Both the position numbers and the translations under genes were made by a program. Shown here piece after piece: positions 24,455 to 60,409 of a stretch of DNA of 64,000 nucleotides. The number at the start of each line of letters is the position of its first letter. Position 1 is the stretch's first letter. A model generated the notes under the pieces. That model saw nothing but the letters and a program-made list of their open reading frames with translations. It was not told the DNA's origin and did not search any database. Origin of the DNA: Podarcis filfolensis (lineage: Eukaryota); assembly GCA_964270895.1 (NCBI GenBank), contig OZ185439.1, one strand, 5' to 3'.

Positions 24455-24529
<75 letters not shown>

Positions 24530-29659: not shown

Positions 29660-29705
29660 TTGCAAATTTGTTTGTCTTTAAGGTGCCACAAGATTCTTTG
29701 CAATA
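29660..29705 (+). mobile_element. Short Penelope-like (PLE) terminal remnant
   Basis: aaatttgtttgtctttaaggtgccacaagattctttg resembles gttggtctttaaggtgcta in the 60.1-kb element and sauropsid PLE ends as recalled. Confidence 0.45.
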
Positions 29706-37921: not shown

Positions 37922-38694
37922 TAGTGTGTCCAGCTCCCTGTCCTTCTATGGGGTTTTAAATTCTGTTTTGCTGAGGTCTTTTAGTCAGGGTGCTGCATGC
38001 AAGATTTTGCAGGATCAGAGCCTTGCCTGCCCTCACCCTCCCTACTTCCACCTTCTTGAATGCCTTGCCTGGCTATCAAATTAATTTTTTTCATTGTAAA
38101 AATCCAGAAATCACCTCTGATGAATTTGGGGCATAACCAGGGCTTTTGTTCAGCTCAGTTCTGGCACCAATGCCGTTATAAGAGAACAAGGGAGGTGCTT
38201 TTTGTGAGTTCTGGCACCTCTTCTTTTAGGAAAATAGCACTGGGCATAACTGACCTCAAAAATGACCCCCCACCACACATATTCCACATATATTCTCTTG
38301 CAATGAGTGGGGGGTGGGTGGGTGGAGTTCTCTAGTGCTTCAAAATAGGTGTGTATTTTGGGGTTTTTTTATCTGAAAGTTTCATTAAAAGGCATTAGCA
38401 TCAGGTAGGCCCCAACTAAAGTAAATGGTAGAAAAATAAACACTGTATATGCCAAGGTATTGAGGGGCTAAATGACCCCAGTATTGGGGAAAATGTCACT
38501 TAACCTGATGTGAAATCAGCTGCTAAGAGAAGGATGTGCTCATGATTCATTGTCTTGGATCCAAACTCCAAATGGCACTTTGGGTTTCCCCCCAAACAGC
38601 AACCTCTCATGTCACAATGCAGTCTGCTTTTTAAACAGAGGAGAGTTTCAAAAGCAGTCTGTGATATGAGAGCCTGCTGCTTAAAGCAAAAAAA

Positions 38695-38745
38695 GAAGAA
38701 GAAGAAGAAGAAGAAGAAGAAGAAGAAGAAGAAGAAGAAGAAGAA
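38695..38745 (+). repeat. (GAA)17 microsatellite preceded by A7
   Basis: 17 uninterrupted units counted. Confidence 0.95.
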
Positions 38746-51441: not shown

Positions 51442-51596
51442 GCCTGCCCTCTAACTCAGTTGGTTAGAGTGTGGTGCTGATAACCCCAAGGTTGCAGGTT
51501 TGATCCCGTATGGGACAGCTGTATAGCCCTGCATTGCAGGGGGTTGGACTAGATGATCCGCAGGGTCCCTTCCAACTCTACAATTCTATGATTCTA
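51442..51596 (+). mobile_element. tRNA-Ile-like-headed SINE with CR1-type tail
   Basis: Head ctaactcagttggttagagtgtggtgctGATaac...aaggttgcaggtttgatccc. Tail cctgcattgcagggggttggactagatgatcc...ttccaactctacaattctatgattcta. Confidence 0.85.
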
Positions 51597-53062: not shown

Positions 53063-53203
53063 AGGGATCACTCAGTTGGTAGAGCATGAGGCTCTTAATC
53101 TCAGGGCTGTGGGTTTGAGCCCCATGTTGGGTGAAATATTCCTGCATCGCAGGAGGTTGGACTAGATGATCCTGAGGGTCCCTTCCAACTCTATGATGCT
53201 ATG
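53063..53203 (+). mobile_element. tRNA-Lys(CTT)-like-headed SINE with CR1-type tail
   Basis: Head ctcagttggtagagcatgaggctCTTaatctcagggctgtgggtttgagccccatgttgggtg. Tail cctgcatcgcaggaggttggactagatgatcctgagggtcccttccaactctatgatgctatg. Confidence 0.85.
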
Positions 53204-58786: not shown

Positions 58787-58978
58787 GGAAAAAGCATCAG
58801 AAAGCCTATTCCAAGATCTCCTGCAAATTTTGAGGAAGGCATCTTATGAAATTGATGTAACCTACAAGCAAAATAATACACTGGAACACACAGATTCATT
58901 GTTCTTGTTGGTATCAGAATGTTTCAGATGCCTTCGGAATGCTTGTGTTCAGTGTACCAAGAATCAGAACGTTATGAG
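58787..58978 (+). CDS. ATXN10: Ataxin-10 coding exon 2
   Basis: tttccag|G...ATGAG|gtatga, 192 nt. EKASESLFQDLLQILRKAS...SECFRCLRNACVQCTKNQNVMR; ECFRCLRNAC is the diagnostic ataxin-10 motif. Confidence 0.96.
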
Positions 58979-59956
58979 GTATGATTATTGCCCCCATACT
59001 TGCATAGTTTTTTAAATGTTAAATTACAGTAACTTGTTTCACCCAACTGAGCTCATAGCCGATTTAACTTTTGAAGCAGGCTCTCTTTGAAATACATTTC
59101 ACTCCTCACTAGTTCACTTCACTTTGCTGTATACTCTTGGCGTTTGAGTGGAAACCTTGTGAGTGAATTGTCCACATTTGTTAAATTGTGTGGCTCAGGC
59201 TAACTGACCAGTGTGTAATCATTATATATCTACATATTCTCTGAAAGTAAATTAATCTGCAAGAGAATCAAGGGTGCATGAACACAAGATTTATTCTGAC
59301 AACTTTTTTCTTTGATTTGCTCTTTTTAAAATACTCGTGAAGTGAGATTTCATAGACTTTATCTTCACCAAGTCTTGTGATTATTTAAGATCTGATTTTT
59401 TTTTGTTAGTCTTGCATCTGGATTACTTAATATTTGTTGGCTGCAAGGATGTGCATTTTATTTGCCCCTGAGGTCGGGTGAATTCTGGGGTGTTCTTCAT
59501 GGGATTTAAAGTGCACTGCAGCAGGGAGCGTTGTGTATCCATGAAGGTTCCCTGCACAGTTGAAAACCCGGATTTTCTAGAATTGTCAGTTGTGCAGGGA
59601 GCATTCATGGCTGGACAAGGATCCTCAGTGCAGAAGTGCACTTTAATCATGTGAGGGGTCAGAACAAGTTGTTAGTTATTTTGAATCTTTATGTGACTCT
59701 TTATCTCTTGCCAGCTCCTCACCATGAAACCCCCCTCCTGTCTGTTTTCTCTCCTGGTGTGCCTTGCCACCTTAGGACTTTTTATATTCATTCCTTTTCA
59801 TAATTGCCCAGTATGACCTCCCTTTCCTAGACTTCTCTGGGCCTGTTGTTTTTTAAGCTACAGTATGTTCTTTCCAAGTATTTTTAAAACCATCTTCCTC
59901 CCCTTGGCTTTTCTTCCTACTCAGCCCCTTTCTGTCACTCTTACCTTACTCAGTCA

Positions 59957-60146
59957 CAGATAGGTAGCCGTGTTGGTCTGCCATAGTCAAAACAAAAAAA
60001 AATTTTTTCCTTCCAGTAGCACCTTAAAGACCAACTAAGTTAGTTCTTGGTATGAGCTTTCGTGTGCATGCACACGAAAGCTCATACCAAGAACTAACTT
60101 AGTTGGTCTTTAAGGTGCTACTGGAAGGAAAAAAATTTTTTTTGTT
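59957..60146. mobile_element. Penelope-like element (PLE) terminal fragment with fold-back inversion
   Basis: gtagccgtgttggtctgccatagtc...ccttccagtagcaccttaaagaccaactaagt..ggtatgagctttcgtgtgcatgcacac resembles sauropsid PLE pseudo-LTR ends. Perfect 12-bp TSD CTTACTCAGTCA at 59945-59956 and 60147-60158. Confidence 0.85.
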
Positions 60147-60326
60147 CTTACTCAGTCAATTACTCCTAGGGGAGTTCACCACCACAGAATTTATTTATTA
60201 CATTACAATATGTATTACAAATTTAGGACTTTATATTATGATACAGCTTTGTATAAAGCACTGGCTTCTCTGCTTTTTTTTTTAATTTCAGAGAATTTTA
60301 AATTTAAAACTGTTCTTTTATAACAG

Positions 60327-60409
60327 AAACCTGGGGCTAATTGAGGCATCTGTACACTTGATCCAATTACTTCACAAATTAGAAACTAACCTGGAGTCAT
60401 TATTGACAG
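60327..60409 (+). CDS. ATXN10: Ataxin-10 coding exon 3
   Basis: taacag|A AAC...ACAG|gtaaga, 83 nt. NLGLIEASVHLIQLLHKLETNLESLLT, compared with human NLDTIGVAVDLILLFRELRVEQESLLT. Exon 4 is not found in the window. Confidence 0.93.

Follow-up and report, generated by a model that had tools for sequence, protein, structure and literature searches.

The stretch of DNA analysed here, hereafter the window, comprises 64,000 nt of contig OZ185439.1 from Podarcis filfolensis (assembly GCA_964270895.1), and all positions are given in coordinates of this window. It includes an intron of 1348 nt in a gene that we take to be ATXN10-like, because the peptides encoded on its two sides resemble human ATXN10: the upstream exon ends with ...SECFRCLRNACVQCTKNQNVM, and the downstream exon reads NLGLIEASVHLIQLLHKLETNLESLLT. 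The exons were read singly, without a joined spliced model. Inside the intron, direct reading of the sequence reveals an insert of 190 bp (59957-60146) between two perfect copies of a 12-bp target-site duplication (TSD), exactly as it had been described in an earlier note on this DNA (Table 1). The same note had placed the insert 180 nt upstream of an exon, which is correct as well: exactly 180 nt lie between the end of the insert and the start of the next exon at 60327, directly behind the AG acceptor. Together with one TSD copy, the insert amounts to 202 nt and thereby to approximately 15% of the short host intron. Approximately 300 bp further upstream, the same intron carries a second, 141-bp element (59506-59646) with 23-nt terminal inverted repeats (83% complementary) starting from TTAAAGTGCAC, another internal inverted pair of 51 nt and TTAA ends. 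This element looks like the relic of a MITE-type DNA transposon.

Table 1. Features at the insertion site (window coordinates)
Feature	Position	Strand	Remarks
Host intron, 1348 nt, holds the insert	58979-60326	+	GT donor at 58979, AG acceptor at 60325-60326; coding exon ends at 58978, next exon 60327-60409
Left copy of the 12-bp TSD, CTTACTCAGTCA	59945-59956	.	12/12 identical to 60147-60158
34-nt tail, long arm only; element 3' end in sense orientation, ends ...CAGACCAACACGGCTACCTATCTG	59957-59990	-	Absent from the right arm; length fits PLE tails
Left palindrome arm, element sense strand is minus	59991-60068	-	Pairs with the right arm at 77/78 positions
Axis 14-mer GTGTGCATGCACAC, self-complementary; shaped like hammerhead helix II (closing pair G10.1...C11.1, CAUG loop)	60062-60075	.	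Longest self-complementary stretch of the 119-nt unit
Right palindrome arm, element sense strand is plus; ends at +78 without tail and adjoins the TSD directly	60069-60146	+	Sequence reading
GAAAGCTC: putative GAAA box, palindromic AGCU (minimal helix III) and C17	60076-60083	+	Mirror copy at 60054-60061 (minus); fits the published minimal PLE hammerhead form
Right copy of the 12-bp TSD, CTTACTCAGTCA	60147-60158	.	12/12 identical to the left copy
ATT immediately 3' of the inferred top-strand nick (between GTCA and ATT)	60159-60161	+	Weak evidence: ATT or AAT at ~2% of positions

Most of the insert is a palindrome without any spacer. It is perfect over 132 bp (60003-60134, 66-nt arms) with the axis between 60068 and 60069, and it reaches 156 bp (59991-60146, 78-nt arms) when a single mismatch at arm position 67 (A6T9 in one arm versus A7T8 in the other) is tolerated. 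In these respects, rereading the sequence gave the same result as the earlier note, including the extension with one mismatch (77 of 78 arm positions are complementary). A point missing from that note is that the arms of the insert are unequal, since the left one measures 112 nt (59957-60068), tail included, and the right one only 78 nt (60069-60146). On each DNA strand, the arm that is joined to the target 3' end has cDNA, i.e. antisense, polarity. The axis itself is the 14-mer GTGTGCATGCACAC, which folds into a hairpin (5-bp stem, 4-nt loop) and is followed by GAAAGCTCATAC on both strands, so that the self-complementary axis with identical flanks reported before was found again. Within the 119-nt unit (window 59957-60075, minus strand), GTGTGCATGCACAC and A6T6 are the only self-complementary stretches, and GTGTGCATGCACAC is the only one that contains GC. 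Perfect palindromes with arms of at least 10 nt occur in the 64-kb window only at the insert and at a (TA)n microsatellite.

We are dealing with one young retroelement insertion that is flanked by TSDs and has a Penelope-type layout. That the event is young follows from the identity of the two TSD copies and from the arms, which differ at only 1 of 78 positions; together with the TSD around the whole unit, this agrees with the recent single event postulated before. Moreover, the whole palindrome lies inside one perfect TSD, and its short arm adjoins the TSD without any extra base. Hence, the palindrome was made at integration and not by later replication fold-back. The AT content is 58% within +/-50 bp around the insert versus 56% in the window as a whole, and an ATT stands directly 3' of the inferred top-strand nick.

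Insertions with such an anatomy have been described for Penelope-like elements (PLEs). Their tails comprise 30-40 bp and are frequently confined to a single end (Craig et al., 2021; PMC8557442). In rotifers, PLE units flanked by inverted pLTRs were found in TSDs of 9-10 bp, with a 31-bp tail on one pLTR, and palindromes were observed at the inverted junctions, which were read as a result of self-priming (Arkhipova et al., 2013; PMC3846280). The corresponding features are present at our locus: a short and perfect TSD (12 bp) encloses the whole insertion unit; an inverted, 5'-truncated copy exists, i.e. two copies of the same terminal segment are joined head-to-head by their 5' ends; a tail of 34 nt (59957-59990) is found on the long arm only; and the inverted junction is formed by a palindrome, the 14-nt self-complementary axis. 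TSD, head-to-head copies, one-sided tail and junction palindrome all match published PLE anatomy, and the Penelope-type insertion proposed in the earlier note is right in kind. By its layout and half-hammerhead form, the insert appears to represent the 3'-terminal part of a short Penelope-like retroelement in the head-to-head form typical of PLEs.

In the PLE insertions of Arkhipova et al. (2013; PMC3846280) and Craig et al. (2021; PMC8557442), the TSD likewise surrounds the whole unit, with 8-10 bp there versus 12 bp here, and head-to-head inverted copies, a junction palindrome and a 30-40-bp tail at one end only are common to them and to our locus. In contrast, the present insert is minimal; it contains neither an ORF nor a direct pLTR and consists of only 112 + 78 nt. 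The head-to-head layout of PLEs has been known since these studies of 2013 and 2021, and our locus is a tidy but ordinary example of it. What it adds is the junction palindrome, which to judge from its sequence has the form of hammerhead helix II, a link that we did not find in the two PLE papers compared (PMC3846280, PMC8557442).

The resemblance extends beyond the helix. The predicted helix II is closed by G10.1-C11.1 and directly followed by GAAA (GUGUG-CAUG-CACAC then GAAA), and the palindromic positions 15.2-16.2, corresponding to a minimal helix III, as well as an H at position 17 are also present (A-GC-U then C). The discovery of PLE hammerheads is later than the 2013 paper of Arkhipova and colleagues. 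Compared with the minimal type I PLE hammerheads of Cervera and de la Pena (2014; PMC4209133), the insert shares the long helix II, G10.1-C11.1, GAAA, the palindromic 15.2-16.2 in an AGCU without real helix III and the C at H17, but it is confined to the 3' half, with neither CUGANGA nor the 5' strand of helix I. A descriptor of the 3' half-motif of the minimal hammerhead matched only the insert in the 64-kb window, with a chance expectation of 0.067 per window, which is in line with the earlier view that helix II, the GAAA box, AGCU and a cleavage-site half are to be seen here. The minimal-hammerhead descriptor detected no complete minimal hammerhead in the 64-kb window. Likewise, no CTGANGA exists on either strand of 59945-60158, as had been stated before for this half of the motif. 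The scan with hammerhead covariance models that had been suggested did not return the family: Rfam hammerhead models gave no match, neither in the whole window at the gathering score nor in the insert region at E <= 10. Both the absence of CUGANGA and the lack of an Rfam match are as expected for a 5'-truncated copy. Some miRNA-family models of Rfam matched at 60010-60127, all below the gathering score, and were dismissed as an artefact of the long perfect hairpin. The insert thus appears to carry the 3' half of the minimal PLE hammerhead form, specific within the window, while the CUGANGA half is absent.

Lacking CUGANGA as well as the 5' strand of helix I, this copy is not able to act as a ribozyme. 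Self-cleavage would need the missing 5' half, and the 3' half would also be locked in a hairpin of 76 bp. What the earlier note described as killing the ribozyme amounts to an ordinary 5' truncation. Regarding the intron RNA, folding of the insert region predicts a stem of 76 bp with -135 kcal/mol, versus -43 +/- 3.9 kcal/mol for shuffled sequences (z = -23.7). The long dsRNA stem anticipated in the earlier note is hence predicted, but with 76 bp in the fold instead of ~78 bp. A perfect RNA hairpin of this length 180 nt 5' of a coding exon could attract RNA editing or processing.

To understand how such an insert may arise, the PLE PAc (Poseidon_Ac) of Anolis carolinensis is instructive. Its reconstitution in vitro demonstrated that both target strands are cleaved and extended, with a preference for 5'-ATT-3', and that reverse transcription starts internally at two sites, the sequence between them corresponding to the ~34-nt tail; the hammerhead cleavage site precedes these sites by roughly 55 and 82-89 nt (Frangieh et al., 2024; PMC11167929). 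At our locus, the predicted cleavage site precedes the two arm ends by 63 and 97 nt, so that these are also 34 nt apart. Furthermore, in both cases the hammerhead overlaps the start of the unit, and the inferred starts at our locus are separated by about as much as those of PAc (~34 nt). However, PAc belongs to a different family, and its consensus (taken from the supplement of the 2024 paper) has no sequence similarity to the insert outside the hammerhead core, so that only the geometry is compared. To equate +78 and +112, counted from the axis, with the two PAc start sites would be an analogy across families. Head-to-head products and their junctions were outside the PAc study (PMC11167929). 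The ATG in the helix II loop of the insert opens a frame of only 9 codons; hence, the source element was probably non-autonomous, or its layout differs from that of PAc.

Among the possible origins of the palindrome we favour, with a probability of roughly 45%, that two cDNAs, one from each nicked target strand, annealed at helix II. According to this scenario, the endonuclease of the element would introduce nicks into the two target strands at a distance of 12 bp, and reverse transcription of the element RNA would be primed by each 3' end. The top-strand 3' end (...CAGTCA, nicked before ATT) would start at +112, tail included, and the bottom-strand 3' end at +78, without the tail, while both cDNAs would run to the 5' end of the RNA. 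Identical antisense cDNAs could pair seamlessly only at a self-complementary sequence, and the only GC-containing one would be the 14-nt hairpin of helix II. The cDNAs would anneal there and each would be completed on the other one, which would result in a spacerless palindrome without anything 5' of helix II, including the CUGANGA half. That the palindrome can be seamless is due to the CATG loop, which is itself self-complementary. The ribozyme helix would then matter only as a palindrome, and catalysis would play no part.

The start of the short arm provides some evidence for priming on both strands. The 12 RNA bases just 3' of it (+78) agree with the TSD at 7 of 12 positions (P = 0.014 in a post hoc test). 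Such a likeness would be predicted for a bottom-strand 3' end that had paired with the RNA to prime at +78. This likeness between target and RNA past the short arm and the 34-nt difference between the arms fit two-strand priming at least as well as the fold-back of a single cDNA. Counting against it, the RNA would have to be removed, and synthesis would have to halt in helix II or else 3' flaps be trimmed away, steps that are not known from PLEs. Furthermore, we deal with one copy and nothing statistical, and the ranking above the fold-back of one cDNA is weak. The single mismatch between the arms is neutral in this respect.

Priming from both strands recalls the twin priming of L1, which leads to 5'-inverted LINE-1 insertions. 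In both cases, the two target strands would prime cDNA in one integration event and the inversion lies inside one TSD. However, twin priming on one L1 RNA inverts a different, more 5' segment and yields no palindrome, whereas here both arms represent the same segment, positions 1-78 from the axis, and an inversion of the L1 type was rejected for this reason.

Nearly as likely as two annealed cDNAs is the model of the earlier note, in which a single cDNA snaps back. Priming would occur only once, at +112 on the top strand, then the cDNA 3' end ...GTGTGCATGCACAC would fold (5-bp hairpin, 4-nt loop) and prime itself, and the self-copy would stop at +78 and be joined to the other side of the target. 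In accordance with it, the join is perfectly symmetrical and located on hairpin-forming sequence, and of the two arms the primed one is the longer, a condition for this model. It is also general knowledge that hairpin-primed synthesis of the second strand is a classical behaviour of reverse transcriptases. In classical cDNA cloning, the 3' end of the first strand folds back and primes its own copying, and the loop is cut away in vitro, whereas here the fold-back would be fixed in the genome. For PLEs, junction palindromes were interpreted by self-priming already in 2013 (Arkhipova et al., 2013; PMC3846280). Hence, the ribozyme-helix-templated route to palindromes that the earlier note regarded as new is not new in kind. 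However, a stop at +78, just one tail length short, would be a coincidence unless one additionally assumes, for instance, that the tail was still covered by protein or RNA. Moreover, the likeness between RNA and target beyond +78 (7/12) stays unexplained and is difficult to reconcile with the snap-back, given that the right TSD consists of nothing but target sequence (12/12). With n=1, neither of the two arguments is decisive. Fold-back and self-priming at helix II hence remain plausible in view of the symmetrical join on a hairpin, but they are not the sole mechanism that fits, as two-strand priming does so as well.

The other explanations are much less convincing. It is improbable that the source was already palindromic, i.e. 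that transcription (perhaps read-through) of an older head-to-head copy gave a hairpin RNA that was reverse-transcribed and inserted as a whole. Non-autonomous PLE derivatives are known (bioRxiv 10.64898/2026.07.22.740005), but the short arm adjoins the TSD without any flank carried over, that it ends at +78 would once more be due to chance, and the reverse transcriptase must have read through a perfect RNA hairpin of 76 bp. Even less credit can be given to a false inverted duplication in the assembly or to a replication fold-back that happened at the hairpin of an ordinary truncated copy after insertion. Complex PLE insertions often trouble whole-genome shotgun assemblies, especially those from short reads (Craig et al., 2021; PMC8557442), but neither event would be expected to recreate a perfect 12-bp TSD around the whole palindrome with the short arm meeting it exactly, and the one-sided tail is a published PLE feature. 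Finally, a DNA transposon of the foldback or MITE type, made up of long terminal inverted repeats only, would likewise be short, palindromic and flanked by direct repeats, but it is the least likely origin given the asymmetric ends with 34 nt unique to one arm, the TSD of 12 bp, which is longer than usual for DNA transposons (general knowledge), and the arms, which carry a 3' hammerhead half-motif and the tail geometry of PLEs.

Coming back to the annealing of two cDNAs, the locus offers a small and clean example of PLE integration, in which both nicks, both arm ends 34 nt apart and the seamless palindromic join can be read to the base. It would tie the two start sites and the two-strand extension known from PAc in vitro to a genomic product. 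More speculatively, helix II could be the place where head-to-head Penelope insertions are preferentially fused throughout this genome, its stem serving as the pairing site for two cDNAs or for one; we regard this generalization as rather doubtful at present. If true, it would account for the inverted architecture of Penelope-like elements, which has long been puzzling, and, moreover, provide a structural, non-catalytic reason to conserve a long palindromic helix II.

Pattern searches, blastn-short, nhmmer and the minimal-hammerhead descriptor revealed no other copies of the insert's family in the 64-kb window. One match at 38745 was spurious, as it belongs to a (GAA)n microsatellite. Exact and gapped patterns searched against collections of metagenomes, viral contigs and bacterial and archaeal genome contigs gave nothing, or chance matches in microbial coding sequence, and a full-text search of the literature with sequence strings of the family yielded no relevant paper. 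Regarding other repeats of the window, a perfect (TA)n microsatellite of ~42 bp is present at 24462-24505 and the long (GAA)n microsatellite extends over 38690-38745. Two tRNA-like matches (51445-51518 and 53070-53125) barely score at the Rfam gathering level (30.0 and 29.8 bits), and ARAGORN reports no tRNA gene there; they are probably the heads of tRNA-derived SINEs. On the minus strand at 29664-29693, a short fragment shares 16 of 18 bases with the AGCACCTTAAAGACCAAC segment of the unit. The similarity does not extend beyond ~30 nt; possibly this is an ancient remnant of a related element.
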